From NCBI GenBank assembly GCA_965649825.1, contig OZ287703.1, positions 677,722 through 741,721 of the forward strand: 64,000 bases of DNA, in the 5' to 3' direction. Under the pieces are notes generated by a model. The model was not told the origin of the DNA. It ran no database searches and saw nothing but the letters and a program-made list of their open reading frames with translations. Within the stretch, counting starts at the first letter, position 1. Each line of letters starts with the position of its first letter. The stretch comes from Penicillus capitatus. Taxonomy: Eukaryota; Plantae; Chlorophyta. The position numbers and the translations under genes were made by a program. Positions 41,171 to 63,749 of the stretch are shown here, piece by piece.

Positions 41171-42771
41171 ATGTCACAGTGTTGTTGTGCAAGCGGTCCC
41201 GGCTACGCCACGCCTCTCGTCAGGCTCTCCAAGACCTCTCTTCTCTTTTAGCGCATTGTGCCGCAGGATGCGATGAAGGGACCACGGGAGAAAATCGTCT
41301 ACATTCCTTGCATTCAACCGGCGGATCGTCAACAGCCGGATTACTTGGCGACCGTTGTGGTCGATCCCGACAGTCCCGACTATGGCAAAGTGGTCCATCG
41401 ACTTCCTTTCGGAATCGGCGACGAAGTGCATCATACGGGATGGAATGCATGCAGCAGTTGCTTCGGCGACGCAACCAAATCTCGCACGAAACTGATCGTT
41501 CCGGCCGTAGCGACAACGCATATCTACATCGTCGACGTCGGGAAGGACCCTTTGCGGCCTGAAGTGCACAAAGTTGTGAAAGGCGAAGACATCAAGATGA
41601 AAACGGGACTCGGCTATCCTCACACATCTCATTGCCTCGGCAGTGGCGAAATCATGATGTCTATGATGGGCGATGCCAACGGCGAGTCGTGCGGAAACTT
41701 TGTACTCCTGGACGAGCACTACGACATCAAAGGGTGCTGGTCTGACAAGAATATCGCCTTTGGATACGACTTTTGGTACCAGCCCAGACAGGATATCATG
41801 ATTTCGACCTCCTACGGTCGTCCCAAGAGCTTCTTAAAGGTAAAGGGACCACACTTTGCTGTTTTGTGTGAAGAAGAGTTGTGCAGTGCTTTGATCCTAC
41901 TGAGGTGGAGAACAATTATGGCTCGATGCTCTATTTCTGGGAGTGGTCCACTCGCCGTCTGATCAAGTCTGTGAATCTCAGACCGAAAGGCAACATTCCG
42001 TTGGAAGTGCGTTTCTTGCACAATCCGGACAAGGCGATCGGTTTTGTGGTATGTTGATTCGTTTGAGTGAGATAAGAGTGAGATCACGTGTGTCGTTGAG
42101 GGATGTGCCTTGAGCAGCAACGTGGTGCTGATTTACAAGAATGACCAAAACGAGTGGGACACAAAATTCGTCATCCAGCTGGAACCGATGAAGGTCGAGG
42201 GGTGGGCGTTGCCCGAAATGCCGGCGCTCATTACCGATATTGTGATCTCTCTGGACGACAAGTACCTTTACTGCAGTCACTTCTTCAGAGGTGTGACCTT
42301 CACTGGTATGCAAGATCGCATTCAAACTGTGTGACAGGTGACATTTGCCAGTACGATATTACGGATCCGCACCATCCTGTCTTGGTCGGTCAAACTTGGT
42401 GTGGTGGTCTGGTGAAAAAGGGCAGTCCCATCAAGGTTGTCTCCGGTCTCCCGGAGGGACGGACGGCAACCGATGTCGTCACAGTGAATGGCGTGGAACT
42501 CAGTGGTGGTCCACAGATGATCCAACTGAGCCTCGATGGCAAACGCCTGTATGCCACGGACTCTTTAATAAGCTCCTGGGACAAGCAATTTTATCCGGAG
42601 CTGGTGAAGAATGGAACGAAGTTGATCCAGATCGATGTGGATACGGAGAAAGGAGGCCTTACAATGAATGACGATTTCTTGGTCGATTTTGGAAAGGAGC
42701 CATGGGGTCCAGTGCTGGCTCACGAGGTGCGATATCCGGGTGGGGATTGCTCCAGTGACATATGGGTTTAG
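41171..42771 (+). CDS. SELENBP1: Selenium-binding protein / methanethiol oxidase (SBP56), multi-exon
   Basis: [16 protein letters not shown]|[84 protein letters not shown]. Confidence 0.95.
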
Positions 42772-42811: not shown

Positions 42812-43577
42812 ATGAAAATTTCGACCTTCGCCAAGCGTGCGTCGCGTCTTTCCGTCCCGCGTCAACGCCCAGGAGTGCTCTACGTTCGCAACGTTTTCAG
42901 CGGAATCGTCCAGGGAACGGCGACGGTGCAGCGATTGGAGAGGAAAAAAGATTTCACGACACTGGTTCTGCGCTTTCCCGAAAATCTTGCCTCCTCCGTT
43001 TCCATCGGATCGAGCGTCGCCATCAACGGCGCCTGTCTGACAGCGACATCCGTTCAGAACGACGTATTGACCTTCGATGCCATCGGCGAGACACTCAATG
43101 TGACAAACCTCTCACAGCTCGAGATCGGGAGTGTCGTTAACTACGAAAAGTAACCGACCAGACGTCACATCAATCTAATATGCGCCGGATCTTAGGGCTG
43201 CGCGTTTTGGCGATGAAATCGGAGGACACACGCTCTCCGGTCACATCCATACCGTTGCCGAGATCGCAGCGATCGATCGCGAATCGGATCATTGTTGCGT
43301 GACCTTTTCCGTTCCGCCCCCTTGGATGAAGTACATTCTCTCGAAAGGATTCGTGGCGATCGACGGCGTCAGCCTCACGGCCTGTCACGCAACGGAGACA
43401 TCGTTTTCGGTCTATCTCATTCCGGAGACCCTTCGAATCACACGACTACGAGAGTGGACGACTGGGCAAAAGGTCAACATCGAGGTCGAAGCACAGACAC
43501 AGGCAATCGTTGATACGGTCGAACGCGTGGTGTCACGTTACATTCCCAGCACCCTACTGAGCAACAGTGTTCAGTGA
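42812..43577 (+). CDS. ribE: Riboflavin synthase alpha chain with transit peptide
   Basis: VFSGIVQG, GSSVAINGACLT, GETLNVTNL, VNYE, GHVHT, KGFVAIDGVSLT, LIPETLRIT, VNIEVE. Confidence 0.92.
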
Positions 43578-43592
43578 TACGTGCGTGCATCA

Positions 43593-45101
43593 TTAAATGG
43601 CATCCAATGCTTGTTGTATGTCATCCCAAATGTCTTGAAAATCTTCGATGCCGCAACTAAAGCGCACGAGATTCTCGTGAATGCCGAGTTCTTTCCGGCC
43701 TTCGATACCCAGATCCCAGTAGCTCATGATGGCCGGTTGGTTGACCAGCGATTCGGCGCCGCCCAATGAGGGGGCAATGTAGGGTAGGTGAACGGAATCG
43801 ACCAGTTTTGCCGTCCGCCATAGATCACCCTCCACTTCGAAACTCACAACGCCGCCAAAGGCGTCCATCTGCGAACGGGCGATATCGTGATCGGGATGCG
43901 ACGGTAGACCGGGATAATACACACGACGGATCTTTGGATGCTCTTCCAGTTTCTTAGCCAGACGCATAGCATTGTTGTTGTGCTGCTGCACTCTGAGTTT
44001 CAGTGTCTTCAGTCCTCGAAGAAAGAGATACGATGCGTGGGGATCGATGACGCCGCCCAGTACATTATGCAATGAGCGGATGGCTTCGATGAGCTCTTCC
44101 TTTCCGACCACAGCTCCGCCCAGTACATCATTGTGTCCTGCCAGATACTTTGTGGCCGAATGCACCACGAGATCAGCGCCGAAGCGAATGGCGCGTTGGT
44201 TAATGGGTGTGGCGAAGGTACTGTCGATGACAACGACAGCCCCATGGTCGTGACACATTTCCGAAATGCGCTCCACGTCAACGACACGGAGGTAAGGATT
44301 CGTGGGTGATTCTGTAAAGAAAAGCGAGACCTGGTGCTGTTCCAGCGCCGCTTGTAATGCTGTCAGGTCCGAAGGGTCAATAACAGTCGAGGAGATTTGC
44401 ATTTTGGGCAGAACGGTTTGGATGAATTGCCGAGTGCGACGATAACAGTCGGTCGTCGTTACGATGTGACCGCCAGCAGGAACCAAAGCCAACAGCAACG
44501 TCGTGGCTGTGTTCATCCCAGATGTCGACAGCAATGCCGCCTCGGCACCTTCCAGCGCCTTGAGCTTCTCTTCCACCACACGCGTCGTCGGATTGCCATA
44601 GCGTCCGTATTCGTAAGAACCGTATCTCCCTTCTTGATAGTCGATCAGCTCTGCCGTGTTGCGAAACGTAAACGTCGCCGTCTGCACGATCGGCGTTGTG
44701 ACGGTGTCTGAGATACGCGGTCGGCCACCGCGTTCGCCGGCATGAATCGACTGCGTGCCGCTTTCCCATGCATCGTTGCGATGTTCGGTATGGAGAGCGA
44801 TGGAAGGCTGGTCGGCTGAAGAGGCGGAAGAGTTACGGACAGACGCTTCGAGATCGTCGACATGAACGGCGTTGTTCGAAACGGCCGTCGAAGGTGTTGT
44901 GCCGTCCGACGACGTAGCCGCGAGACGAAAACTGGATCGCGACGAAAATCCGTTCGAGGACGACGACGACAACGGCGATACACGGCGGTGACGGCGGTGA
45001 CGCGACGGAAGACGGTCAACGCAACGAAAACGCGATAATGGATGAGGAGGCGAAAGGAGGGCGTTGTGCGAGTGGACCCACCGAACCTTCGCTGCTAACA
45101 T
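43593..45101 (-). CDS. CGS1: Cystathionine gamma-synthase, plastid-type, single ORF (in frame to 45260)
   Basis: Ser/Arg-rich transit peptide, TQSIHAGER, YGRYGNPTT, FTESPTNP, DSTFATP, PLP-lysine motif HSATKYLAGHND, SLGGAESL. Confidence 0.92.
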   Translation of the reverse strand: MLAAKVRWVHSHNALLSPPHPLSRFRCVDRLPSRHRRHRRVSPLSSSSSNGFSSRSSFRLAATSSDGTTPSTAVSNNAVHVDDLEASVRNSSASSADQPSIALHTEHRNDAWESGTQSIHAGERGGRPRISDTVTTPIVQTATFTFRNTAELIDYQEGRYGSYEYGRYGNPTTRVVEEKLKALEGAEAALLSTSGMNTATTLLLALVPAGGHIVTTTDCYRRTRQFIQTVLPKMQISSTVIDPSDLTALQAALEQHQVSLFFTESPTNPYLRVVDVERISEMCHDHGAVVVIDSTFATPINQRAIRFGADLVVHSATKYLAGHNDVLGGAVVGKEELIEAIRSLHNVLGGVIDPHASYLFLRGLKTLKLRVQQHNNNAMRLAKKLEEHPKIRRVYYPGLPSHPDHDIARSQMDAFGGVVSFEVEGDLWRTAKLVDSVHLPYIAPSLGGAESLVNQPAIMSYWDLGIEGRKELGIHENLVRFSCGIEDFQDIWDDIQQALDAI

Positions 45102-46746: not shown

Positions 46747-48348
46747 ATGACAGCGAGGTTCAAAGCAATTCGGCGAGTGGCGAAATCGGCCATGATGTGT
46801 CATCGTGTGGACGCTTCTTCCGCAGCAGAGCAGTGGTCAACGCCGTCTGGTGGCATCATCGACCACTTGGTCGGTATACTAAAACGCACACGACGATGGC
46901 GCCGCGACGGACCTGCTCTGCGAAGATTGAACCGACATTGGTGCGTACAGCTGAATCAGCACATCGTCGCAGTCCAGCCACACAGAAGTCGAGCTCTCGT
47001 GCACGAAGACGCGGCGTCGCTGCATAACTTTCCGCAGCTGACGTCTCTAAATGCAGAAATGTTTGCAAAAGAATACTGTGGTGATCGAAATGCAGCTCTC
47101 TTTCGGGCGATCGCGCAGCTTCCGAGACTGAAGTGCCTGGAATTATCCTCTGATGTCTTGAAACACATAAGCACATGTGATCTGGCCCAGCTCACAGGTA
47201 TCATCCGTCTACGGCACCGGGCGAGTCGTCGCATGACGCTTGTGGATGTCATGAAACTGGCACATCTGCCGTTACAGGAGCTGGCGATTGAATGCAGCCT
47301 CGTGTATCTGGAGCACCTCATACCGACGCTTCCGAAGCTGCAGTACTTAGAAGTCCGGACACAGACATTCGAATTGGAATCTTCGGTCATCGCGGTTTTG
47401 AAACCTATGAAACGTCTGAAGCTTGTTTTTGAAAGGGGATTGGCAACAGTGGCGCAACTCGCTCAGCTGACGTCCTTGGTCGCACTTGAGATTAACAGGG
47501 TTCGTTTTCCCTCCGTCGAAGCTTTCAGAAAACTCCCGAGACTTGGAAGCCTGTCGATCACCGTGATGACGCACGAGAGTCTCTTTCTCGATGATCTCTC
47601 CAGGTTCTCGAAGAAACTCGACGATCTGAGCATCTTCCCAGTGCACAAAAATGCACCCTTCGCTCGCTCGGAAGCGGACGAGCCCATTCACTTAAAGAGC
47701 CTCAGGCTGACCAACTGCCTCCTCGGTTCGGTCGATATGTTCCATCGCCTAACGTCGCTGACTTGTCTCATCCTGACCGACTGCCAGCTGGAGCATGGAC
47801 TCCAGTCGCTGACTGCCCTGAAGCGGTTGAGGATGCTGTGTCTCATGGATGTGTTTCCGGACTCCCGTCCTCTGCCGCCGGCGCCACTGAAGTCGTCGGA
47901 TTTCCGAGAGCTGAAGGTTCTGTCGATGGATCTGGGCCGAGCCTACTCCACATCGATGGAGATGATCCTCTCGCTGACGGGGTTAGAGATTCTGGGACTG
48001 GATTGTCCAGATCCCCTGCCGCATCACAAGATCGCTCAGCTGGAGCTGCTCCCCAACCTTCGAGAGCTCGGTGTGTTCTGTCCGCAGAAAGAAATCGGAA
48101 AGGACCATCGATTTTTCGAATCACAATTCTTGATTAAATTGGAAGCACTCTGGGTGACAAACTTCAACGAAATCTGCTCTTATCGAGAGAAGCGAGTCAA
48201 GGACCCGCGGACGGTACTCAGTTCGTTGTACCGTCTCCTACAGAATGCTCCGCATCTAAAAGTAACGAATGGTATCAGTTCTATAAGATCTCTCCCTTTC
48301 ATAGAATACCTCTGTCAACAATGTGCACCTAACTTTCGTTGCAGCTAA
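46747..48348 (+). CDS. F-box-like/LRR protein, paralogue 6
   Basis: 533-aa ORF; WSTPSGGIIDHLVGILKRTRRWRRDGPALRRLNRHW, LRRs, C-cap FLIKLEAL...QNAPHLKVT. Confidence 0.85.
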   Translation: MTARFKAIRRVAKSAMMCHRVDASSAAEQWSTPSGGIIDHLVGILKRTRRWRRDGPALRRLNRHWCVQLNQHIVAVQPHRSRALVHEDAASLHNFPQLTSLNAEMFAKEYCGDRNAALFRAIAQLPRLKCLELSSDVLKHISTCDLAQLTGIIRLRHRASRRMTLVDVMKLAHLPLQELAIECSLVYLEHLIPTLPKLQYLEVRTQTFELESSVIAVLKPMKRLKLVFERGLATVAQLAQLTSLVALEINRVRFPSVEAFRKLPRLGSLSITVMTHESLFLDDLSRFSKKLDDLSIFPVHKNAPFARSEADEPIHLKSLRLTNCLLGSVDMFHRLTSLTCLILTDCQLEHGLQSLTALKRLRMLCLMDVFPDSRPLPPAPLKSSDFRELKVLSMDLGRAYSTSMEMILSLTGLEILGLDCPDPLPHHKIAQLELLPNLRELGVFCPQKEIGKDHRFFESQFLIKLEALWVTNFNEICSYREKRVKDPRTVLSSLYRLLQNAPHLKVTNGISSIRSLPFIEYLCQQCAPNFRCS

Positions 48349-49165: not shown

Positions 49166-50102
49166 CTATCTGCCGGGATTTGCACTAGCCGTCGCACTTG
49201 CTTGAATCATGCCATTGCCTCGCACACTGCCGCTAACATCAGTAGTTGTGGTCGAGGATTGAGCACTACCCGTTCTGTCAACATCACACAAGATGACAGC
49301 CTGTATGTGATCCAGAAGATACGAACCCGGATGCCGGAGACGGTGACGGTTTGTTCGTTGATGGGGAATCTTTACGATCGCAATAGACCCAGCACTTCTT
49401 GAAGGCCGTAGAGACAAGTTTCCGAACGGCGACATCAAAAGAAAAATCGGCATCGAGTCCCAAGACACCACTGGCCGAACAGGCGGAGGCCTCTGCCTCT
49501 GCTGCGGCCGATACCATGGCGTTCACCGCATCCACGACGGCCGTCTCACACTCTGCCGTATTCGTGCCAAGTTGCTTGGCAAGGTCGACAATTGTATTCG
49601 CGACAAAGCAGCCGACGACCTCAGCATCCGCGGCCGAGTTGGCTGAGCCGCATCCGACGGATCCATCTGTACATTCGGCTCTCACAAAGGCTGACGCAAA
49701 TGCCGCAGCAGCGACGGTGATATAGCATTTTGCGTCGTCTCTCGGTCTGACAGAACGGCAGGTGCCTTGGTCATAGAGTGTATCGCTTGTGTAGCATCCT
49801 TGAAGCTCAGAAACGAACGTCTGTACACAAAAGGCATGATATCACGAAGGGGTGCGAGGCGTGACGTACTCCGCAGTAAGCGTTGGAAATGGACCGCACG
49901 GCGCAACTTCCACCCGTCGAGACAACAGTCGCCGACGAAAACGCCGTGGCGCTGCATCGTCCACTTGGATTTGGACAACGACTGTTAAAATCGGCTGCAG
50001 GACATTAGATAAGCTCAAGACACAACGAGGACGTATTGGTCGACCTGAAGCAAATGTACCGAGAAGGACGACGCACAGAGCAACGAGCATATTGTTTGCC
50101 AT
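49166..50102 (-). CDS. Secreted Cys/Ala-rich protein, family member A (4 inferred exons)
   Basis: Signal peptide MANNMLVALCVVLLGTFAS|ADFNSRCPNPSGRC...AYCG|TFVSELQGC...AFKKCWVYCD; 14 Cys; Ser/Pro linker and short Ala/Ser tail exon. Confidence 0.78.
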
Positions 50103-50211
50103 CTTGAAACCTTCACTGTCTATCTTGCAATTCCTTGACCTGCGCAGATTGCAAACGACGGTGAACAATTCGCGAAAAATCTGAAAGCATGAAGATTGAA
50201 AGAACGTCACG

Positions 50212-50219
50212 TATTTATA
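50212..50219 (-). promoter_or_regulatory. Putative TATA box of secreted gene A
   Basis: TATAAATA ~110 nt upstream of ATG 50102. Confidence 0.45.
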
Positions 50220-50499
50220 CGTTGGCTGAGAAGGACCAGATAGACTGTCGCTTCGGCGTCAGATACTTCATGCTGTAAACTGTTCACATGACCTGTCTAA
50301 CGGTCGTCTATAACTTCTTGATCTTGTGGAGAACGATGATTCAAGTTCTAAAACGGACTTTGGTTGAAGGGCTATCAGCCAATGATGGCCGCAGAACGCA
50401 TTGGCCGCGGCCAGAGCAGAGCGAACGGGAATCTGAGCGACGTTTGGGGACAGCTGGCAGGCTTTTCCAGCTAACGTCCACCTTCGGGGCGAGTACTGT

Positions 50500-51200
50500 C
50501 ATGTAGGCGCGGCACCACGTGGTCGGCGTCGTATCGACCGCGTGGCTTCGGACAGCGGTGGACCGCTGCTGTCTTGTGGACAGTGAACGAAGTATGCAGA
50601 AGTTCGCACGCGCTTCGACGCGGCGCGTTGTGAACTCGCGTCATCCACAAGAGTCGTACTGCCGGTAAAACGGCACTGCGTCACCACGCAGACCAGCCTT
50701 CAAAACCTATGAAGGTTGCTTGACACGCCACAGCCAATTCGCCCATCGTCGCAAACAAAGACGGCAATCCATCAACGCACTCTCTTCAGGGACCAAAAGC
50801 GATACCTACTCTATCATTCAGTAAAGTACTCGATTGCGACAGGGACCAGATTATGAAGCTTGGAGAGGCGAGTGCTTCTAAGGAATGCAATGCCGTTCGA
50901 AAGTGTAGGAGTACTATACAGTAGAGAGGTAGATAGCTCTGCTGTACTTTGGCATTGGTTTTCCTAGACGAAACATGCTGAAACCATTGTCGAGTAAGGT
51001 ATTGTTCCAAGCCCCTGTCAGCTGGCGACTTAAAGTACTGCCGCAATCAACTGTGCATGCAGTCGTCTCCGGTTCCAAATCTCCATCGATCCTATCGCTG
51101 ACAGGGTTAGAGATTCTGAGAGTGGGCATTGTCCACATCTCTTGTCGCCTCACAAGTTTGCTCAGCTGGAGCTGCTCCCCAAACTTCGAGAGTTAGACTG
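50500..51200 (+). pseudogene. Degenerate copy of F-box-like/LRR paralogue 6
   Basis: 51088-51118 matches 47964-47994 with 2 mismatches in 31 nt; 51151-51192 matches 48025-48066 with 3 mismatches in 42 nt; weaker match 50515-50545 to the F-box-like start. No continuous ORF; spacing implies internal deletion. Confidence 0.75.
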
Positions 51201-52641
51201 TTCCAGCCTGCACTGCTGCTACCCGAGATGGGATACCTTCGGATAACATGTATTCTGTCTGTAACGTACATGATGTCACGCAGAGGACGTCAGGAATGCG
51301 TATGCGTCGTTTGACGTCACATAGCGAAAAATGTTAGTTCTTTGCCTTACCTTAATCGTAGCGGGAAGTTCATTGTCCTTCCTTCAGAATGGATATTCAC
51401 GAAGAAGCCTTGGAGTTTTGACCCGAAACAGAAAACGAGAGATTGTAGGATATTCCTAAACTGCTCGACGTCAACGATGTCGCCCTTCAGCGAAGCGGCG
51501 GGTATGTTGCGTCGCATCTCTCCTGCAAGCGTTGGCATCTATCCGACGACGAGGTTTGCTGCCTTTAGACTCTAGTAAAAGAGTAAGCAAAGTCTGTCGT
51601 CGGCGTGCGGCGAATTGCTTTCGGAATAACCCATGTGAGGCCGTCCAGTTGGACTTGGATAATCTAGCACAGGATGTCGAGTACCATCTCTTGTTTACTC
51701 AGTCTTTGTGCATCGTATTCTAATCTTGGATATAAGAACCACATGGCGATCGAGAAATACGCAAATCTCTAACAATACTACTGTCTGCGTCAAAGATGTC
51801 AGTCGGCGCATTGGGCATTTCAGATCATCCAGCTGCAGAGTTTATTAAGAGACATGGTGGAGCAAAGGCACAGTAAACACTCGCAATGATGCGTTTGTAC
51901 GTGCGCCTCTCGAGCTGACGTCTGTTTAACACGAAGAACATGCTCTTGTTCTGAGGGGAAGGCCGCTGATCGAAATGCGTGACACGATCGCGAGTCTCAA
52001 CGTGATTGGTAGACGGTCAATTGCAGAAACGTCGAGAAGCGTCATGGATGTGTTTTTGAGACAGCTTTGCTATTCGCTCTTTGTCTAGATCCTCTGATCT
52101 CAAAGTCAATGCACACAAACAAAAAGACTCCTTCAATTTCATCCTCTTTATGGTAGACTGTAATGCTGTCGACGACTAATGATACCGTTCTTCTTGGTGC
52201 GTTGTGCTTACGTGCTGAAACCATAAAAGGGTGGTTGAGTGCCTTCGAGGTTGCCTTGGGAAAAGAGCGAGGAATCAAATGATCGATGTTCGCGATAGAG
52301 AACGCGTTTTTCTGTGAGTGTCATCGATTTCGTTCGTTCGTTAAGCCGAGATGTTAACAGCTCTCTGCCAATGAACAACAACCCACTGATTCATCGTTAA
52401 CTGCCGATGGCAATGATTTGGGGGTGGTGTAGGAAATGTAAGATCCTTCTTGACCATCTTTGTAATGAGTGACCAGATTTGACGACGCGAAATGCGAGAA
52501 CCCATTGCAACATGTTCTGCACACAGAACGATGTTCGTATAGGACTTGTTTGGTTGAAGAGTACTATTTGGCTGTGGTATCGGCGTCTTCCATTGTGAGC
52601 CTAACGACTCCCGACGGGTCCTGCTGTAACTTCACCCATTA

Positions 52642-54230
52642 TCACGACACTGGCCCTATCATCAACCCGACTGTTATGTTTGGCGATAGGAAAGGCACGA
52701 ACGTTGGTGCTGCAGGAGGTGGTGGTGACGTAGTAACAGTTGCTCCTGCAGAAGCACTACCTCCGTCTGCTGAGGCATCAGTGGTGACAGCCACCATTGC
52801 GCCATCAGATCTGACAGATCAGCAAACTTATATACATTAAAGAGTGAAAAGGGACAGACGGGGAGGCCGGAGGAGGAGGCGTTGATGGTGGCGGTGGAGG
52901 TGGCGTATCGGGAGATGGAGTCGGGGAAGCCGGAGTGGGAGCCGGAGGTGTTGGTGAAACGGTAACATCTACCTCAGCAGAGGCCGTTGCGCCTCCGCTG
53001 GCCATGGCACTAGCGTCAGCTGCTACCATTCCGCCATCAGATCTGTCAGAAAAACAGAGTTATACTCTGCAGCGTGAAGAAAGGGACAGACGGGGTCGGA
53101 GATGCGGGAGCGGGAGACGGGGTCGGAGATGCTGGAGCGGGAGACGGGGTCGGAGATGCGGGAGCGGGAGACGGGGTCGGAGATGCGGGAGCGGGAGACG
53201 GGGTCGGAGATGCGGGAGCGGGAGACGGGGTCGGAGATGCGGGAGCGGGAGACGGGGTCGGAGATGCGGGAGCGGGAGACGGGGTCGGAGATGCGGGAGC
53301 GGGAGACGGGGTCGGAGATGCGGGAGCGGGAGACGGGGTCGGAGATGCGGGAGCGGGAGACGGGGTCGGAGATGCGGGAGCGGGAGACGGGGTCGGAGAT
53401 GCGGGAGCGGGAGACGGGGTCGGAGATGCGGGAGCGGGAGACGGGGTCGGAGACGGAGGAGAAGGAGACGGAGGAGAAGGAGAAGGTGTCACTGGAGGTC
53501 GATCATCACAGTAGATAAAACATCGCCTCAAAGCTGAAACGATGCCATTCTGGACACTGATATCGAACGCAAAATCGGCATCGAGTCCAACGACCCCGCT
53601 GGACGAGCATGCCGCGGCCTCCGCGTCGGCTGCGGCCCGCGCTGTGGAATCCACCAAACTCGCAAGCGCCGACGAGCATCTTGTCGATACAGGTCCGAGA
53701 CTTGCTGCTAATTGCGCGATCGAATTGACCGTAAAGCAACCGACGATCTCGGCATCCGCAAATGAACTGGCCGAACCGCAGCCGATCGATCGCCCATCGC
53801 AATCCGCTCTCACAAACGCACTGGCAAACGCCGCAGCGCTAACCATGGCAAAGCACTTGGCATCGGATTCGGGTGTCACCGGACGACAACCTCTACTTCC
53901 ATAGAACGATCCCGAACCGAAGCAGCCTTGAAACTCGGAAGGAAAAGACTACACAGCAGCCATGTGATACCCATCCATGCTCGTGTTTAAGCGTACTCCG
54001 CAAAACGCGTTAGAGCTGGCCCGCACGGTACAACTTCCACCGCTCGACGAGGCGGTCGCTCTTGTCCCGACTATGGCTGTGCAGGTCGACGTCGGGTTCG
54101 GGCATCTCGACACAAAACCCGCTGCGGGCCGCGTGTTCCTTTAAGGCCACGAACGTGCAGCGGTCTAACCTGAAGTAAGGGTTCCCAATAGGGTAATGGA
54201 CAAAATCACAAGCGCCGTGAACGACATCAT
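52642..54230 (-). CDS. Secreted Cys/Ala-rich protein, member B, with Pro-rich (HRGP-like) tail; 3' end uncertain
   Basis: [20 protein letters not shown]|[14 protein letters not shown]...AFCG|SFPSEFQGC...[10 protein letters not shown], then (SPTPSPAPA)n and two further SDG-start exons; 14 Cys. Confidence 0.8.
53089..53451 (-). repeat. Coding minisatellite, 13 copies of a 27-nt unit encoding SPAPASPTP
   Basis: Plus-strand unit GATGCGGGAGCGGGAGACGGGGTCGGA repeated from 53101 to 53451; only one substitution seen (copy at 53128). Confidence 0.97.
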
Positions 54231-54334
54231 GCCGTTTATGCTGCCTCCCTTTGAGGTAATAACCCGCTTCAAGTTGGCAGGGTATGCGAAGAATTCGCGA
54301 AAAAATCTAGAGGCAAAAATCTAAAGCGAAGGGC

Positions 54335-54344
54335 GAATTTATAG
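54335..54344 (-). promoter_or_regulatory. Putative TATA element CTATAAATTC of secreted gene B
   Basis: Identical 10-mer upstream of genes B, C and E, at similar distance from the ATG. Confidence 0.55.
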
Positions 54345-56220
54345 CTTGGCCGATTCGATGCGATCCGATCAGATAACGAGTCGCTTCACTGTCAGCTACC
54401 GAACAGCGTGCGCCTTGCACGAGGCACCACATAACAGCGCCCCACGGCTTCCTTACCCGTAGGTACAGCTGATGAGAAGCTGAGAAGTTCACCAAGATGC
54501 CGAGAGTCCTGGACATTAATATCCTTCCTTACCTGGTGGGCCGCGGCGGCCTTTCGAGGCATATATTGTCCACATGCCCTAAACAGCTAGGAGCTGACAC
54601 ATCCAACGCAGTCAGCTTCTGACTCCATGTTGCCAGGTGTCTTCTTCACGCGGCTTTTCCCACAAGTCGGAAAGCCAGTTGTGTTGCGGAGGCATAGCAG
54701 ATGCCGCCCAACAACGAACGAAAAGCAGCTAGCCGAGCACAGCAGTCGCGTCGCTGAAGATGCTTCGGTGAACGTACTCTGCTCAAGCCAATGTCGTTGA
54801 AAGAGCGATAAAGCCCGGTGCGTGCGACGCGTCTGGGTCCACCTTGTTCGGCCGAGGCGGCGAGTCGAAGATGCCCAAGGCAGCGAGCGTCTCGTTCTTC
54901 GTTTCATAATGCAGGTACAGCGCGTGCGGGTACGAGTTCGAATTTGCTAAACAGTGCCGACTACAGCTGAACCGTTGCTCGCAAAGGCCTTCGAAGGCAT
55001 AGGCTGGTCTTTAGAAACGGAAAAAGCGTGTCTAGTTGGAATAGTACGCAAAATTGTAAAGTGCCTTCGACGCATCCTGTCCACGAGTACGATCGGAAGG
55101 CACCCACTACATTCGAATGGTGTCATGCCGAAGCCTATTTTCAGCTATACGCGTTTGCCGCATCTCCTTCCACTCTCCCGGCAAGACAACGAATCGCCCG
55201 TAAACAAGTGCTTCTGAGCGTCTATGCCTCAAAGACCGAGAAAAAAATGTTCCCTGGGCACTTTCCACGTAGCCACTGCATGGTTCCCATTTTTAGAATG
55301 GCATTAAGTTGTTTGTTGTTATTGACGTCACCCATCATGTCTATGAAAGCATCCGCTCCGTGATAATGTCCTCTACACGATCTTAGTCAGCTGTTTGGAT
55401 ATAGTGGACTGGACGTCCCGCTTGATTTTTTAAACAATTGTGTGTGGCATCGGCTTAAGAGCCATGTACCCTGAGCGCGTCTAGACGGTGGCTATCTTAT
55501 CGACGATCGCTACTGCCATCATTAGACAGTTGCTGTCTCTAGAATCAAAAACTGCAGCGGAATCCAAATGCAATTGGAGATCGAAAGAGAAAGCCGATCG
55601 ATCTATAGGCAGCAAAGGCGCCCTGCGAGCCATCGAGATCTTACTATTCGTTTCCTGTGCGTGGCGGTGGTCGTGATGGGCGATGATGACCCGTGCACCG
55701 AACGCGTTGCGCGTTTTTCGATGAGGAGGTATTTGCGAATAGAGCATGCTCTAGCTGCCAACAATTTCCTTGCCCGACACATAAATCCATCCAACATTGC
55801 CCGAATATCCCATGTGTATGTTCGAGTGCTAGATAGGGAGGGTCTTTGTCGTTCCAAAACCTGCATTTGCCAAAAATAGAAACAACGAAATGGAAATCGA
55901 CATCAAATGCGATTTCCGTAACCGGGCGAAGTCACTTGATCAACAGAACCCCTTCTCAAACTGGAGAGAAATCCAGCCGCTTGATAGTTAGCAATTGCCC
56001 GTATAGCACAAATGAAAGCAATGCGGTCAGACCGCAAAGAAAACGGCTTATTCTGCCGTTTTATACAAAAAAGAGGTTATACTGGCTTCGTTTGTAAATG
56101 CAAGTGTCGTATGGACCACCAATACTTGATAGATAGAAAGGAAACTTTGCAAACCACGTGGGTCATTTCGATGTCATGCAAAACTAACTTTGTGATCATT
56201 CTCGCGTAAGTATTTTCAAT

Positions 56221-57075
56221 TCAATGGTCTGTGGTATTTGAAGGAGGAGATGTGACATTTGCAGGAGGAGATGTATCGGTAACTTCTGCACCTCCCGCGG
56301 ATACCGGCTTTTCCACCTCCTTGTCGTCAACTTTTTCGCAATACACCCAGCACGACGCAAAAGCCTTAGAAATGACGCTCTTCACTTCGCTGGAGAACTG
56401 GAAGTCTTTCGCCATTCCTGGTTTGTTTTTGGAAGAGCAGGCACTGGCCATGGCAGTTGCACCAGCAGACGCGATGTTCACGACCACGGCATCGACTGCT
56501 GACTGACAAGCGGGATCGTTGGTTTTTCCGCTATATAGGGTTACGTTAACGATAGCTTCGGCAACAGAACACGCTGTCGCCGATGCTTCTACTCTCGCCT
56601 CAATGCACCCCTCCCCTTTGCCCGTGCATTCGGCAAAGACCGAGGCGGATGCAAAAGCCGACGCAGCTGCCTTCGCCCAACATTCGACGTCGCGTTCGAT
56701 ACCATGAGTACGACACTTTCCATCTGCTGCGTCTCCGTAGAGTTTTTCGCCATTGACACAACCCTGACTTGCCGACGCAAATGTCTAATAATGCAAAGCG
56801 TTAAGGAGAACGGTTCGTAGGGAACGGTCGCAGAGGATGGATACCTTGCAATCCGTCTCGTGTTTGAAAGTGCACGGTTTCGCACGCTTACCATACTGCT
56901 TAATTTTCGTGCGAACGTATTCACTGTTGCAGCTTGATTTGGTTGCGGGACATGTCGACTTGAAATCGGCTGCATGCACACTTCAAGAAAACCGACGAAT
57001 ATGTGTTGCCATACCATAGACTGAAGCGGCGCCCAAAAGGACGACGAACAGTGGCACAAACAAAGTCTTCCACAT
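56221..57075 (-). CDS. Secreted Cys/Ala-rich protein, member C
   Basis: MWKTLFVPLFVVLLGAASVY|ADFKSTCPATKSSC...DCK|TFASASQGC...AFASCWVYCE; 14 Cys; same two intron positions as A and B. Confidence 0.78.
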
Positions 57076-57178
57076 TTTGTTCAAAACTGAAACGGTGTTT
57101 GTTCTCCAAACGATGTCGCTCTCGACGCGTCCTCTTGGGCAATTGCTTGCTTGGGTGAAGAATGCACGTAGGGCCGTC

Positions 57179-57188
57179 GAATTTATAG
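57179..57188 (-). promoter_or_regulatory. Putative TATA element CTATAAATTC of secreted gene C
   Basis: Same 10-mer as upstream of genes B and E. Confidence 0.55.
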
Positions 57189-57839
57189 AATACGTTGACG
57201 TGACAGGTGTGGTACGCGTGTGCTGAGAGCCAATATCCAACGCTCGTTTTGTACCTCTACATGAGAGCAAGGGTCATCAGCTTCTCTATCCGTCAATGCA
57301 GCTCCACTGAACCATGAAGTTCGCACTGCGTGCCCATCTTGAAATCATTCTTAAAAAATGGGACGCGGCCCTGAAGCGACCTTCGTCAACGTATGGTAAC
57401 CCGTCGGCCATGCTGACCACAAAAACAGAAGATTCTCGGGAGAACGGTAAGACACCATCTGCATCGATGAACGTGGCGCAGCATCGATTGCGCTTGAATG
57501 CTGAGAAGACATTTGCGAGCAATGCCGCGTTCGCGTTACGCTTTTGAGAATCAAGACGTTGAGCCGTTTATGCTTTCAACGGAAACCCCGCGGAGGAATG
57601 CAGCTCCTTGTCTCCTAAAGCTAATCCCCCACGGTTTATACAGACGACCTCACTCAAAGAGAAAAAAGTCGATTGTTTCATTGGGAAAGAAGACTCCTTC
57701 CGTCAAACCGCACAACTGACAAAGACATCGATCAAGACAGCACAGAACGGAACGCGTAGCTCCACGGCATTCTGCATGCCGTGTCGTTGTCACTAGCACC
57801 AAGCAATAAAAACTCAATAGCGCCTACAAATGGGCATCA

Positions 57840-58660
57840 TCAAAGACCGAATCCTTCGCAATACATCCAGCAAGCGTTGAATGCCGTTGCCACTTCATCT
57901 TGCACAGCTGCTATGAAATCGCGGTCCGCAGTGGTGGAAATCCCTTCTGGCAAGGCGCAGATCGATTCTCTGAGGATGGCGGTCTGACTTCGTACGGCGT
58001 CGATCACTGCTACGATGCTCTCTTCGCAGATGGGATCTCCAAATGTATTGACTCTCTCTGCAACGTCCCGGATGGCACGGCCCACTCTGCATGAGACCTC
58101 GTCGGTCTCTTGCCGGATAGCAGCGCAGGCAACGCCGCCTGGAGAACAATCCACCGAAACGAATCCGGAAGCGCCTGCGGCGGCGGCCGCAAAACACGCT
58201 GCGTCTTGTTGGATATCGACGTTGCGGCACTCTGTCTCCGATGGTGGTTGATCCGTATTCAGGCAAGCATTCGCTGCCTGTTGGAAATCCTAAGCAAAGA
58301 ACGTCGTCACAACGTCGCCCGCTTTGTCGATGCATTCTACCGCCTCTGAAGAATCGGATGTCACCGAACACTGTCCTGGACTATCGGCAATGACTCTCGC
58401 CTCGGCAGCATTTGGGCCTCCACTCCCGTCAGCAGCTACCGCAAAGCCATCGACACTCACATCGCCGCTGCCGACAATCGTGGTCTGAGCGGTCGCTGTC
58501 AAGACGGACTGCGGAGCAGATGGTGGACACCTGTCCGCAAATTGCGCTAGAAAGGAACATTGGCGTCTCGCAGGTATCGACGGACATATGGATCCTTACC
58601 CTCAGAGACGATGACGCCTGAGAGCATGACGACTAAAAGAGCAATGGCCTGCTTAGACAT
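57840..58660 (-). CDS. Secreted Cys/Ala-rich protein, member D (divergent, 12 Cys)
   Basis: MSKQAIALLVVMLSGVIVSE|AQFADRCPP...GQCSVTSDSSEA|DFQQAANAC...AFNACWMYCE; introns at the family positions. Confidence 0.72.
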
Positions 58661-59209
58661 AATTGAATCCACGAATGCACGAATGGGAATCCGGAACTGG
58701 CTATCACTGGAACTGAACAAAAGGACCCGGTCGAGGTTTAAATACCGCGCTGGTCGTTCACCGTGAAGTTGTGCTGACGAGACGCGTGGACACCTGACTG
58801 GAACTTTCCAGAAGTCGCGGCGTCAAGTGACGTGTCTCTCTACGACATAGCGTCGACGGCTGACGCGTCGTTTCTTTGTGAGTGGCGTCGGAGGCATAGA
58901 GAGTCATGCGAGAAACGCCATTTAGTGGGCGAACCTCCAAAACACGTCACATTCCGCAGCAGAATGGCGAGGACGGAACTCTGTAGGAAAAAGGCGCCCA
59001 TTGCGCGTAAGTATTAGGTAAGTGCTCGAGACAGGTGGCACGTCTATGGAACGCATACTGACCGAAATCGCACGCAGACTTGCCTGCCCGCTTCCTAATC
59101 ACGTCGCCGTCTGACGCAGCAACAGTTCTTGTTACGTACAGGTGTCGTACGATAGCCAACGTGCATGACCGCTAGGGTGTCCATGGGGACACCGCGGGAG
59201 CTTCATACG

Positions 59210-60433
59210 ATGGAAGAAAAACGCGGCGACCGTCGAGGAAAGAAACGCGAGGCCCCTTACGCTGCCTCGTATTCGCTGCGTAAACGTTCTGTAACGAACA
59301 GCACAGGGTAGGCTGCATCGACCTGCGATTTGTAGTGCCGTTGTTCGTGGCTTCGCAGAAACGACGACTTGTTGCGGCAGTTTGTTACGTCGTTGAAGCC
59401 GGACGCGCGTTTCATCGTGTTTTCGGGCAGCGGTCTTTCGGCCGATGCAGGTTTGAAAACCTAGGCGTCCCATTCGACTGCTCCCCTGTCGCCACAGGCG
59501 TCTCAATGTTCACCACAAACAACGGCCTCTATGCGAGAGCCCAAAAGAGATTTCGTGTCGCCAATGGGCAGAAACTCTTGTCTTATGATTTCTACGAGCA
59601 GCGACCTCGCGATGCTCAAGTCATTGGACGAAAAGAGTGATGCCCATTACTGAGAAGATCTTTGTTTTGAGGCATTCTTCGCTTCGATCTATGAAGAAGT
59701 TCTCAATTGTCAACCAGGCCGTAGTCATCACCTGCTGCATGAGCTTCAGACGAGAGGTCACATCTTGCAGCACTACACACTAAATATAGATGGCCTGAGT
59801 CGACTGCTGTCGGATCAAGGCCTCGTTGAGATCCACGGAAATATCCAGTACCCCCAACATCGGCAGTCACATCATAGAATAGTTGAGGCTGTCACATCTG
59901 TAGGCGTCTCTTCTGCCCTTCTTGCGGGAATGTTTGCGACATGACCCTCAGAATGGCACAGAGAATGAAGCAGCGAAAGGAACAGATCTGCGCATCCTGT
60001 CTGTCCGACCACCTTCGCTCCAGAATCGTTCTGTATCAAGACAAAGATTCTGAAAAGATAACACCCGCTGCCGCCCTCTGGACCTCAGTTCAGCAAAGCG
60101 CAAACGTCACTCTCATGCACATTCTCACACTTCTTCGATCTTCTCTTTGCGGTAGGCAGTGGATGATATTCTGTGGATTGGCATGAGTTTCAAACAGGCT
60201 GCTTCCATCGAGTACTTTAACAAAGTCTGCTCCCTTACCAGTGAGCAGCAGTTAGGCATTCATCAAGACATAACCTATGTCGTGCAGAGGACACCGTCCG
60301 GCACGTTATTGTGAATCCAGACGAAGAGACAGAGTTCTATCTACGCTCCGGCGTGACACACAGTGACGTATCTCTCTTGCATCTGCAACGAGAAGCCTCA
60401 GTGGTACTGGAAGCGATTCGTGAGCAGAGATGA
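59210..60433 (+). CDS. Sirtuin (SIR2-family NAD-dependent deacylase), multi-exon; start uncertain
   Basis: IVFSGSGLSADAG|VSMF...GLY, HYTLNIDGL, VEIHGN, Zn ribbon CPSC...CASC, LRSRIVLY, LWIGMSF, HVIVNPD; stop TGA 60431-60433. Confidence 0.82.
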
Positions 60434-60448
60434 GATAAAATACGCTCG

Positions 60449-61957
60449 CTACGTTTGGTTGAGATCTGAAAAGAAATTAGGAATCGACTGTTTTTTCTTC
60501 ATCTTTTTTCTGGATCTCTTGCTCAGCTGAGGCTTTTCGCGCTTAGAGGGTTTATGTTCCGCTTCCTCCTCGTGTGCCTCCTCGTGTTCTTCGACTTTTT
60601 CGCCGGTAAGAATCTTCAAGTTTTGAATATCCCACAGACGAACACAGTTCTCCAAACCAATCGAAGCCAAAAGAGTGTCATCTCCACTAATACTGAGTCG
60701 TTCGATCGTATCGGAGTCCCGGTGACGACCGATCACTCCTAACACACGATTCGGATCGAATCTTAGGACACGTAAGACACCATCGGCACACCCTGTCACA
60801 CTTTTTTCGCTGAAAAGGTATTCTAAGTGAGATTAGGCCGAACAGACCTGTCACGACAGATTGGTCGTCCAGAGACACCATCGCATCGATCGATCCGCGA
60901 TGCGTTTGTGCACTTCCAGAAAACCAGGCGTGTGTCTTGTCAACCGTCAAAGGTGAGAAAACTGCCACTTTTCCACTAGACGTCCCACATATCACCTTTC
61001 TACCATCTCCAAGAGGCTGCAGGGATACGCCCTCTTCCTTGAAACCTGACAATCCAGGTGAGACCACAGGAAATGCTCGCTCAGCTAACCGTCATGCGAC
61101 TGAAGCACCGTCTTGAATCTGCGCATGTCGTTCACAGTGATGCTGGTATCGCCGCTGGCAGCAACAAGGCGATGTGTTCCAGGGAGAAACGCGAGATCGG
61201 TGATGTAGTCCACATGCGCCTGGACTTCTCCCACCTCTCTGCGGCACCTCGTGTCCCAGACCTGTCCATTCGCGCATCAACATCCTCTTCTGTGCCCAAA
61301 GGGCCCATCCACCCATCTCACTTTTAAAACACCACTGTCATCTCCCGAGGCCAACGTTCCATCTTCCAGGTTTTCGATTCGATAAATCTCGCACCCCTGT
61401 CCCGCCGCCTCGATGGTCCTGCCGAAATGTCTCTCAAAATCCCACCCTCAGGTGAGTCACAGACGTCCGTGCCTGACGCATTGTCCCGTCGAGGCGTCGA
61501 AGAGATGAAGCCGTCCGTCGCTGTGTGCGGATGCGAAACGCGTTCCCTCTGCTCCAAACAACACAGCTCGGACTGGCGACCTGACAGCCTCTCCGCACAG
61601 AGAACGCTCACACCTAAGCACCCCCTACCGAGTCGAGCTGTCTCAGAAACGCGATAACCGACGTGTAGTAGACAGCTGGCCTAAGGGTCGCCTTCTCGGC
61701 GAGTTCCCCTTCGAATTGCCTGTCTATGTCCGCGGGACTGTCTGTGTCCGCGTCGAGCAGCGGGCGACACGAGAGAAGACGTATGTCGCCGGTGATGCTC
61801 CCGACGGCGAGCAACGTTTTTGTCGGATGGAAGCTGAGGTCCTGAGGACCGTCGTCTCGTTGAGATGCAACGGGGCGGACTATGGACTCACCGTTGGCTG
61901 GTCGTCGAGGTCGATACGACTCGACGCGCTGCGAAACTCCGCTGGCGACAAAGCCAT
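60449..61957 (-). CDS. WDR55: WD40-repeat protein WDR55/JIP5-like, multi-exon
   Basis: DQPT|DLSFHPTKTLLAVGSITGDI, KVICGTSSG, SIDAMVSLDDQSVVTG, GVIGRHRDSDTIERLSIS...VRLWD, Lys-rich tail ending NFFSDL. Confidence 0.8.
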
Positions 61958-62782
61958 GTCTGACCCTCAGACGTTCTTTGGTGTACGACGATCGTTGCAT
62001 TGTACCTACCCTTTCAAGTTATAGCCTGCGTAGTTTTTCGTACTTTCGAAGGAGATTATTATTCCAACGAAAGCAAAACAAGAGAAACGCGTTGTTGTAC
62101 AGAAGCCACGTGTGGTCCGTCTGAACACCCTCGATAAGTAAAAACAAGGCATCCTTATAAGAGCCGCGTGTGGAAGATAAAACGTCATGTAGCTATTTAC
62201 CTTCTTGCTGAAACGAAGCATCGAATCTCGATTTCGTTTTTCTTTTTGGTGCCTCGGGCAGTCTGCTTTAGGTAATATCATGGAAACAAGGAGGATCCCT
62301 TTGATACCTAGCGTTGGGATGAACCTGGGTTTTCTAGAAGGAATCGAATCGTTTACCGACAACACTCAAACGTAAGCAATCATGGCAGATGCTTGTCCAT
62401 CCAGATCGATGGTGAGAGTTCCGTCGCGTCGACAACACTCCCATTGTTCGCTATGCGATTTCGTGGACCGAAACGTCCTCTGAGGCGGCCGATTGCGAGG
62501 GCGGCGTCGGGCAGATACAAGTGACTAACTCCAAACTTCCGTTTCATGATTTTAACGATTGTCCTGAACGTTTTCAACAAACAGGCTACTTGTTTGAATT
62601 GTCTTTCAGGAGACAATTCATCGACGACGACGATGGCGAGTCATAAGGTACTCGCAGGCAAAAAACTGTAAGATAGATCATAACCGGGAAAGAAACCCAG
62701 AAAGAAAAAAATACGAAGCACGTGATACTTCTGCTAATGGCTTTGCGTTTGTCGTGCTGACTGCTTAGCATCGACTTCATCA

Positions 62783-63651
62783 CTAATGATTGGTGGCATT
62801 GGCGTCCGCTTGGGCACCATCACCCTTCGTTGTCTCCTTCTCTTTGGATTTTTTACTACCGGCCTTCGCATCTCCATCAACTGCAGAAATAGCGATGCTT
62901 TCTCCTTTCTTATCTTCGCAGTACACAAAACAGGCGGCAAAGACTTTAGCGAAAACCTCTTCAAGCGCCTTTGCCAATGCAAAATCACGATCGAAGCTGG
63001 CTTGATTGCTGCCGACACAGGATTTTGAAAATGCCGACGCGGTAGCTTGGGCAATGGCCGTAATCGAGGCGTCAACCGCCGCATCGCACACGGCGTTGTC
63101 ATGGCCTCCGACGGAGACGTACAAGTCGACAAAGACTTTAGCGACAGCGCAAGCGATGGCATCGGCGTCTGACTGTGCTGATACGCAAGCAAACGTGTAG
63201 TCATTATCTTTCCCAGCACACTCCGCTTGAGTGCGTGTCGCAGCAATGGCCAAGGCAGAAGCTTGCGCATGGCACTTGGCATCCACCCTGACATCGACCG
63301 TTCTGCATTTTCTCAAGTCGGCGTAAAAACTACTGCTGTCGAAACAACTGCGGGAGCCTTTGATCCATGCCTAACAAAAATGCCAGAAGTGAGTTTGGTC
63401 AGAACCTCCGCGTTAAAGCTTACTCCACAGAAAGATGCCCCGCTCGCGCTGCAATGTCCGGGTCCTTTGAGGCTAATTCTGAGCGATGTATTGGCCTTGC
63501 ACTCGGTGATTGGCACACACTTTTGGTACGTAGCATCTAGACAGAGACAGAGAGCTTCTTGATAACCTAGCCCGAATTATAACCGCGGCTTACCGACTCC
63601 GTTGGAGGCCAGAAGTGCAACAAGAAGCACGAAAACTGCGGCTTTATACAT
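62783..63651 (-). CDS. Secreted Cys/Ala-rich protein, member E
   Basis: MYKAAVFVLLVALLASNGV|DATYQKCVPITEC...ASFCG|AWIKGSRSC...VFAACFVYCE; 14 Cys; same intron positions. Confidence 0.78.
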
Positions 63652-63739: not shown

Positions 63740-63749
63740 GAATTTATAG
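63740..63749 (-). promoter_or_regulatory. Putative TATA element CTATAAATTC of secreted gene E
   Basis: Same 10-mer as upstream of genes B and C, ~90 nt upstream of ATG 63651. Confidence 0.55.

Follow-up and report, generated by a model that had tools for sequence, protein, structure and literature searches.

A 64,000-nucleotide stretch of the green alga Penicillus capitatus (contig OZ287703.1, assembly GCA_965649825.1; hereafter the window) carries, between 49 and 64 kb, five paralogous minus-strand loci, A to E, which we regard as almost certainly real genes and whose products are, judged from their N-termini, very probably secreted. The proteins share an alanine-rich core on a scaffold of 14 colinear cysteines (12 in D), and there is a good likelihood that they constitute a family not described before. 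That they form a secreted, disulfide-stapled tandem family acting as matrix- or wall-associated glycoproteins is an explanation we consider evenly balanced between right and wrong; the matrix or wall role taken by itself, which is argued by analogy, falls a little short of that balance.

Splicing at GT..AG on the reverse strand gave complete reading frames for all five genes, with ends identical to those proposed in an initial annotation made from the sequence by manual splicing. As that annotation had also remarked, the open reading frame (ORF) track of the window shows only fragments of these genes; the window lies on a 944,726-bp contig of the ENA HiFi metagenome assembly ERZ25074695 (38x), where again only prokaryote-style ORF fragments were called. 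The gene models are as follows.

49166–50102, minus strand: gene A, four exons (50102–50045, 49994–49870, 49820–49327, 49274–49166)
52642–54230, minus strand: gene B, five exons (54230–54170, 54121–53997, 53948–53092, 53042–52860, 52810–52642)
56221–57075, minus strand: gene C, three exons (57075–57015, 56969–56845, 56784–56221)
57840–58660, minus strand: gene D, three exons (58660–58600, 58546–58341, 58289–57840)
62783–63651, minus strand: gene E, three exons (63651–63594, 63536–63424, 63370–62783)

All introns are GT..AG, 45–60 nt long and conserved in phase. Exon 1 (58–61 nt) codes for the signal sequence in every gene and is followed by a phase-1 intron of 45–57 nt directly after the hydrophobic N-terminus, just as first proposed. 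Exon 2 (113–206 nt) codes for an N-terminal Cys-loop subdomain, and intron 2 (phase 0, 48–60 nt) had been placed after the fourth cysteine; this is true of A, B, C and E, where it lies one residue past Cys4, whereas D has no Cys4 and carries the intron at the same aligned position. The large exon beyond it codes for the alanine-rich core and ends in all five genes with the predicted [AV][FL]xxC[WF][VIM]YC[DE] signature. Genes A and B have additional tail introns in phase 2. Intron 2 of D (58340–58290, 51 nt, GTAGAA..GCTTAG) is the sole in-frame option and has equal length in the ortholog described below. For gene A, a model ending in …CHLV was rejected; the four-exon model with a phase-2 tail intron fits both the end coordinate and the ortholog.

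Each gene also has a TATA box upstream of its ATG, with a regularity far beyond chance for a 7-mer.

50213–50219, minus strand: TATAAAT box of gene A, 117 nt upstream of the ATG
54337–54343: TATAAAT box of gene B, at −113 from the ATG
57181–57187: TATAAAT box of gene C, at −112 from the ATG
58737–58744: TATTTAAA box of gene D, at −84 from the ATG
63742–63748: TATAAAT box of gene E, at −97 from the ATG

The precursors range from 238 to 464 residues (mature proteins 22–42 kDa) and detect one another by tblastn with E-values of 1e-5 to 1e-50; the same search found no further family copy elsewhere within the window. Gene A encodes 261 residues, namely a 20-residue signal peptide, a 188-residue core with 14 cysteines and a Ser/Pro/Thr-rich tail; B encodes 464, its 14-Cys core being followed by a repeat rod, two tail exons and a moderately hydrophobic C-terminus. 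The product of C (249 residues, 14 Cys) has an acidic/SPP tail and three N-glycosylation sequons, and that of E (252 residues, 14 Cys) a tail rich in Lys, Asp and Glu. Gene D (238 residues) lacks Cys2 and Cys4 together, leaving 12 cysteines, has an insertion of 26–27 residues in the N-terminal subdomain and has nearly no tail (EGFGL). The 14-column cysteine scaffold anticipated for the whole cluster thus applies to A, B, C and E but not to D, and the cysteine count of the core is even in every case. The core was correctly described as alanine-rich (17–20% Ala, with 6–7% Cys, across the five proteins), and the C[WF][VIM]YC[DE] motif is present in 5/5.

The N-termini consist of a short polar start followed by a hydrophobic h-region of about 20 residues, with a maximal 10-residue Kyte-Doolittle mean of 2.9–3.4. 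Small residues occupy positions −1 and −3 of the cleavage context in four of the five proteins, and −1 is alanine in four of the five.

An assembly of a sister species (ERZ26696514, 173x) contains a syntenic contig, L005, onto which we projected the exon models. All five genes recur there in unchanged order, at 76–85% nucleotide identity across genes and spacers, with introns 1 and 2 at the same places, GT..AG ends and near-identical lengths. Frames are open in C, D and E and in the cores of A and B, and 69 of the 70 aligned cysteine columns are conserved. The A ortholog is 77% identical with three introns, all GT..AG (Cys 15/15, dN/dS 0.29); that of B is 83% identical in its core (Cys 14/15, dN/dS 0.47); those of C and E have intact ORFs (Cys 14/14 and dN/dS 0.46 in both); and that of D keeps 12/12 cysteines at dN/dS 0.26. 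Synonymous divergence (dS) between the orthologs is about 0.5–0.8. The inferred exons are supported indirectly, by introns and open frames in the sister genome and by colinear full-length relatives elsewhere.

For comparison, a neighbouring cystathionine gamma-synthase (CGS) gene has dN/dS 0.08 and 95% amino acid identity to the sister species, and a neighbouring leucine-rich repeat (LRR) gene 0.11 and 92%; by tblastn the A to E orthologs are 52–83% identical. Pooled by segment, dN/dS is 0.20 in the signal peptide, 0.50 in the N-terminal subdomain, 0.27 in the helical core and 0.52 in the tails, so that no segment in the comparison of the window with L005 gives a signal of positive selection, every pooled value being below 1. 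The five genes are under purifying selection, yet they evolve several times faster than their neighbours. Because their dN/dS of 0.26–0.47 stands against 0.08–0.11 in the neighbouring genes, and because their structure is kept in the sister species, we take them to be real, constrained and fast-evolving.

These data contradict the suggestion that A to E are decaying pseudogenes, or chance ORF fragments joined by optimistic splicing. Such a reading could appeal to the lack of transcript evidence from the source organism and to the fragmentary prokaryote-style gene calls. However, frames, intron positions and cysteine columns have been kept over the synonymous divergence given above with dN/dS well below 1, the TATA boxes stand at a fixed distance from the ATG, and full-length relatives are found on other contigs, including a transcript-like one with untranslated regions (UTRs). 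We consider this explanation extremely improbable.

The same rates bear on the main rival to a matrix or wall role, namely that the genes encode stable, secreted cysteine-rich proteins for defence or interaction, diversified by tandem duplication and acting, as antimicrobials, inhibitors or effector-like proteins, on microbes, on grazers or on symbiotic partners. Ortholog identity of 52–83%, compared with 92–95% for the CGS and LRR neighbours, dN/dS three to five times that of those neighbours, variable inter-Cys sequence and tails on an invariant cysteine scaffold, and local expansion to at least eight copies would all suit such a role. However, no segment reaches a dN/dS of 1 or more, the mature proteins are larger than typical antimicrobial peptides, and no similarity to toxin, inhibitor or enzyme families was found in Pfam, in a profile search of PDB sequences or with Foldseek. 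No signal peptide is present in the flanking LRR genes, which have a cytoplasmic, F-box-like/LRR look, not that of receptors. On balance we consider a defence or interaction function rather unlikely.

The initial annotation had described the tails as varied and the sequence between the cysteines as divergent; both descriptions hold, tails and inter-Cys sequence being highly variable on an invariant cysteine scaffold. Within the cluster, B has a long Pro/Ser/Thr rod, A and C have short SP motifs, and the tail of E is charged. The rod lies within exon 3 of gene B and is encoded by the following array, identified with Tandem Repeats Finder and by translation.

53088–53471, minus strand: tandem repeat of 27 nt, 14.2 copies, 98% match, encoding the Pro/Ser/Thr/Ala rod of gene B

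The sister species has a different and shorter repeat at this place (PATPSPTPSP…, L005:10345-10750), which indicates that the 98%-identical, 14-copy rod turns over fast by repeat expansion. The two tail exons of gene B are duplicates of each other, each starting SDG[GA]MVA, with identical donor (CC before the splice junction, GTCTGTCCCTTT after it) and acceptor (CAG before, ATCTGATGGCG after) motifs. A recurring motif, [SV]-D-G-[GDA]-[AM]-x-A, is seen in the tails of A, B, C and E and of the relatives P0002, P0003, P0005, P0010 and P0013 (for example SGDGADASV; tail sites include 52642–53042, 49166–49274 and 62783–62915 of the window) and may be a site of processing, cross-linking or metal binding; in B it begins each of the duplicated tail exons. 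Several tails in the family end in His or Lys (…TNH, …TDH, …GHK, …GKGH, …KHH).

An exhaustive hidden Markov model (HMM) search of 1.84 billion representative proteins at a threshold of E<=1e-3 recovered 27 representatives, 17 of them at E<=1e-10; a word-indexed homology search with the five-sequence profile matched only the window's own ORF fragment. The close HMM matches have the same 14 cysteines and come, unnamed, from metagenome or SRA assemblies. Named relatives, all annotated as hypothetical proteins, come from Bryopsis sp. KO-2023 (BSKO_04115, GMH36247.1; BSKO_09760, GMH41850.1; BSKO_09354, GMH41444.1), Caulerpa lentillifera (g4870.t1) and Ostreobium quekettii (CAD7701791.1), and a single borderline, low-complexity match comes from Haematococcus. 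With the five-sequence profile the relatives from the Bryopsidales have E-values of 1e-12 to 1e-5; with the 26-sequence profile these fall as low as 1e-43, and the alignment is homologous end to end over about 190 residues. Genes A to E thus belong to a wider green-algal domain family.

A table of cysteine columns from the same alignment separates two subfamilies, with 14 and 10 cysteines. The 14-Cys subfamily comprises the source alga and its closest relatives (P0002, P0005, P0007, P0009, P0010 and P0011 share the columns), and we define it provisionally by a signal peptide, a phase-1 intron after it, 14 colinear cysteines and an ending C[WFYML]x[YHRTNQ]C; A, B, C and E have all four features, and D has them with 12 cysteines. 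The relatives from the Bryopsidales share the signal peptide, ten cysteine columns, the Ala-rich helices and a G-x-G-[FY]-[AG]-C-G turn. They differ in lacking C50, C73, C112 and C184 as a block and in lacking the C[WF]xYC ending, and most carry an additional C-terminal Cys-rich module (…CC…CxC…GPW…CFC). BSKO_04115 of Bryopsis has two head domains with (PSGDT)n repeats between them, and P0015 has an acidic Pro-rich linker. Since cysteines disappear blockwise (C13 with C40 in D, C30 with C91 in P0027, and the four columns above in the 10-Cys subfamily), the pattern of co-loss supports putative disulfide partners.

P0002, P0005 and P0007 are full-length proteins on contigs of about 1 kb, colinear with the spliced models through both intron positions; the P0002 contig, the one of these inspected for its flanks, is transcript-like with UTR-like ends. 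The genomic contigs of P0010 and P0029 keep the phase-1 intron immediately behind the signal peptide but lack intron 2.

The securely named relatives all belong to the Bryopsidales, an order known for wound plugs and the aggregation of cytoplasm (bioRxiv 10.1101/2023.11.22.568388), and it might be supposed that the family supplies siphonous algae with lectin-like factors for aggregation or wound plugging, in a role similar to that of bryohealin. The multidomain relatives could indeed be multivalent. The lectins of Bryopsis comprise BPL-1 (bryohealin, F-type), BPL-2 and the H-type BPL-3/4 (bioRxiv 10.1101/2023.11.22.568388), and like the present proteins they are secreted or released siphonous-algal proteins from expanded gene families. 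However, Pfam identified no lectin domain, whether F-type, H-type or other, in any member examined, and none of the Bryopsis members is one of the listed lectin genes: GMH36247.1, GMH41850.1 and GMH41444.1 are absent among the BPL-1A-L, BPL-2A-C, BPL-3A-C and BPL-4A-B accessions. BPL-2A-C (GMH37924.1, GMH38563.1, GMH45872.1), which have no Pfam domain, likewise show no overlap with the family's Bryopsis matches, a comparison made by accession only. We judge a lectin or wound-plug function improbable.

The absence of a recognisable domain, already noted on first inspection, was upheld throughout. A hmmscan against Pfam-A returned nothing credible for the five proteins (E<=1), ten relatives (E<=0.1) or the 26 aligned domains (E<=1), and when all PDB sequences were searched with a profile the best E was 0.06, for unrelated low-complexity proteins. 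AlphaFold2 reached a predicted local distance difference test score (pLDDT) of 44 with the five-sequence alignment, and of 72.8 with a predicted template modelling score (pTM) of 0.68 when given the 26-sequence alignment. The latter model has helices at residues 37–47, 67–84, 103–124, 130–155 and 163–184 and two short hairpins between them. Foldseek matched it to nothing significant, finding generic helical bundles and rhodopsins in PDB (best E 0.57, TM 0.34) and generic helical bundles in BFVD (best E 0.43). Elicitins, nsLTP/2S albumins, PMEI, hydrophobins and CFEM proteins gave no profile or fold match in Pfam, the PDB profile search or Foldseek, and literature searches on cysteine-rich secreted proteins or wound-plug proteomes of the Bryopsidales turned up no description of the family. 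At this model confidence the predicted fold is without a described counterpart, and we found the head domain described neither in Pfam nor in PDB nor in the literature searched. The proposal that these are undescribed, disulfide-stapled secreted proteins is thus supported, as searches for a described family by sequence profile and by structural model came out empty.

Elicitins and elicitin-like proteins of oomycetes are small, secreted, all-alpha, disulfide-stapled domains in clustered, fast-evolving families, often with tails rich in Ser, Thr and Pro by which they are tethered to the wall. The likeness is an analogy only: they have 6 cysteines compared with 14, in another pattern and another lineage, with no Pfam or Foldseek match to the present family. 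A second parallel is found within the green algae, where chimeric hydroxyproline-rich glycoproteins (HRGPs) are the main building blocks of the volvocine extracellular matrix (PMC10762512). Pherophorins and other chimeric HRGPs of Volvox and Chlamydomonas combine a secreted, Cys-containing globular domain with a Pro/Ser-rich rod and occur in tandem-duplicated families. They differ in that there is no sequence relationship and the head in A to E is predicted to be all-alpha and Ala-rich; the pherophorin domain (PF12499 / DUF3707) was unmatched by hmmscan in the five proteins, the ten relatives and the 26 aligned domains. The combination of a globular domain with a Ser/Pro-rich rod is found in gene B (14 repeat copies) and in BSKO_04115; A and C have short SP motifs only, and D and E have none. 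By analogy the design logic would be the same as in chimeric HRGPs and pherophorins, placed on an unrelated head domain. Lineage-restricted, tandemly expanded, modular families of secreted cysteine-rich proteins are a familiar kind, and it is the head domain that appears to be new.

We propose that A to E are independently transcribed nuclear genes of a chlorophyte alga that arose by tandem duplication, and that the signal peptide would direct each precursor into the secretory pathway. The mature protein would then open with a small Cys-loop subdomain, continue as a bundle of about five Ala-rich helices stapled by as many as seven disulfides (from 14 Cys; D has 12) and end in a variable low-complexity tail. 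Outside the cell these proteins may act as matrix- or wall-associated glycoproteins, the rigid disulfide-stapled head serving as a putative interaction or cross-linking module and the tail, probably O-glycosylated, as a spacer or as an anchor or tether; the Pro/Ser/Thr rod of B would then resemble HRGPs. We favour a matrix or wall role because of this rod, the short SP motifs of A and C, the Bryopsis relatives with several heads linked by repeats, and the use of the chimeric HRGP design in other green algae. Among the possibilities raised in the initial annotation, which included wall, adhesive, wound-plug, lectin, pheromone and defence proteins, the evidence leans towards matrix or wall.

Several points weigh against this proposal. 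A scan of JGI metagenomes with an alignment of A and B found no relatives or transcripts, and the signal peptides were called by hydropathy and the −3/−1 rule only. The N-terminal 60 residues of the structural model are poorly defined and its confidence is only moderate. A true rod is present in gene B only, and D is essentially tail-less; the raised evolutionary rate would be just as compatible with defence or interaction.

Still more tentatively, the module of about 190 residues may represent a new fold and an unrecognised extracellular superfamily of ulvophyte (Bryopsidales-related) algae, heading wall or matrix glycoproteins in parallel to, but independently of, the pherophorins, with the 14-Cys form a lineage-specific, doubly reinforced version. 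The molecular nature of wall and matrix proteins in ulvophyte and siphonous green algae is almost unknown, knowledge having come from Chlamydomonas and Volvox. Found in Bryopsis, Caulerpa, Ostreobium and the source alga, this conserved domain, secreted and rich in disulfides, is therefore a candidate component of the extracellular apparatus, of defence or of the wound response, and the Bryopsis genome together with RNA interference makes its role testable in that genus. The head domain is well suited to become a domain entry of its own, and as a marker the family should help in the annotation of eukaryotic contigs now cut into ORF fragments by metagenome pipelines.

The cluster is not confined to the five genes first recognised. 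These are all present, but at least three more members lie 17–34 kb past the 64,000 end of the window on the same contig, giving at least eight copies within about 48 kb, of which the five-gene cluster is the densest part. The following were located outside the window.

beyond the window end: E-like gene P0003, then a WDR55-like gene
about 532 kb (record position): A/B-like member
about 522 kb (record position): P0011
L004:3-800 (the same as L006:16195-16919), L006:9787-10573 and L004:10001-10690: locations of these three members
L004:11744-11899: one short fragment

The sister genome contains a D-like fragment near its P0013 gene (L007:14097-14536). Directly downstream of gene E lies a WDR55-like gene (about 60449–62000, minus strand, WD40), and a 958-nt tract within it (60966–61923) is 98% identical in nucleotide sequence to L006:11081-12038, representing two WDR55-like copies about 17 kb apart. 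The second copy adjoins P0003. As the adjacent E and P0003 proteins are only about 40% identical to each other, the tract points to gene conversion or to a partial duplication of very recent date. A family gene with a WDR55-like gene downstream is also found in the genomic contig of a distant relative (L008), and for this reason the arrangement is probably ancestral.

Housekeeping neighbours of the cluster are genes for a selenium-binding protein SBP56 (41273–42771, plus strand, split ORFs) and a riboflavin synthase with Lum_binding domains (42812–43577, plus strand), followed by the plant-type CGS gene (43593–45101, minus strand, intronless). The top matches of the CGS protein are green-algal only, at 73% identity in Bryopsis sp. 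KO-2023, 72% in Ostreobium quekettii and 66–72% in Tetraselmis, trebouxiophytes and chlorophyceans. These matches place the source genome in the Chlorophyta, with no close relationship to a sequenced genus, and the occurrence of the family in Bryopsidales makes an ulvophyte probable. The window further contains six paralogous, intronless genes with the Pfam domain LRR_14, 513–636 residues long and 24–35% identical to one another.

14845–16593, minus strand: LRR_14 gene
16853–18505, minus strand: LRR_14 gene
19117–20658, minus strand: LRR_14 gene
31861–33771, minus strand: LRR_14 gene
33846–35492, minus strand: LRR_14 gene
46747–48348, plus strand: LRR_14 gene

They have no signal peptide and share a conserved N-terminal 'LRxLNRHW' motif with an F-box-like look, and their sequences suggest a cytoplasmic LRR family that has expanded locally and is interspersed through the region. 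We read the nuclear code as standard because neither TAA nor TAG occurs in frame within the long intronless ORFs; some ulvophyte orders reassign these codons, and a standard code argues against those orders. Finally, a 1160-residue ORF on the minus strand (24215–27697) encodes a NACHT domain at the N-terminus and numerous HEAT repeats after it; G+C is raised here (0.60), GC skew is strongly negative, and long antisense ORFs overlap the frame.

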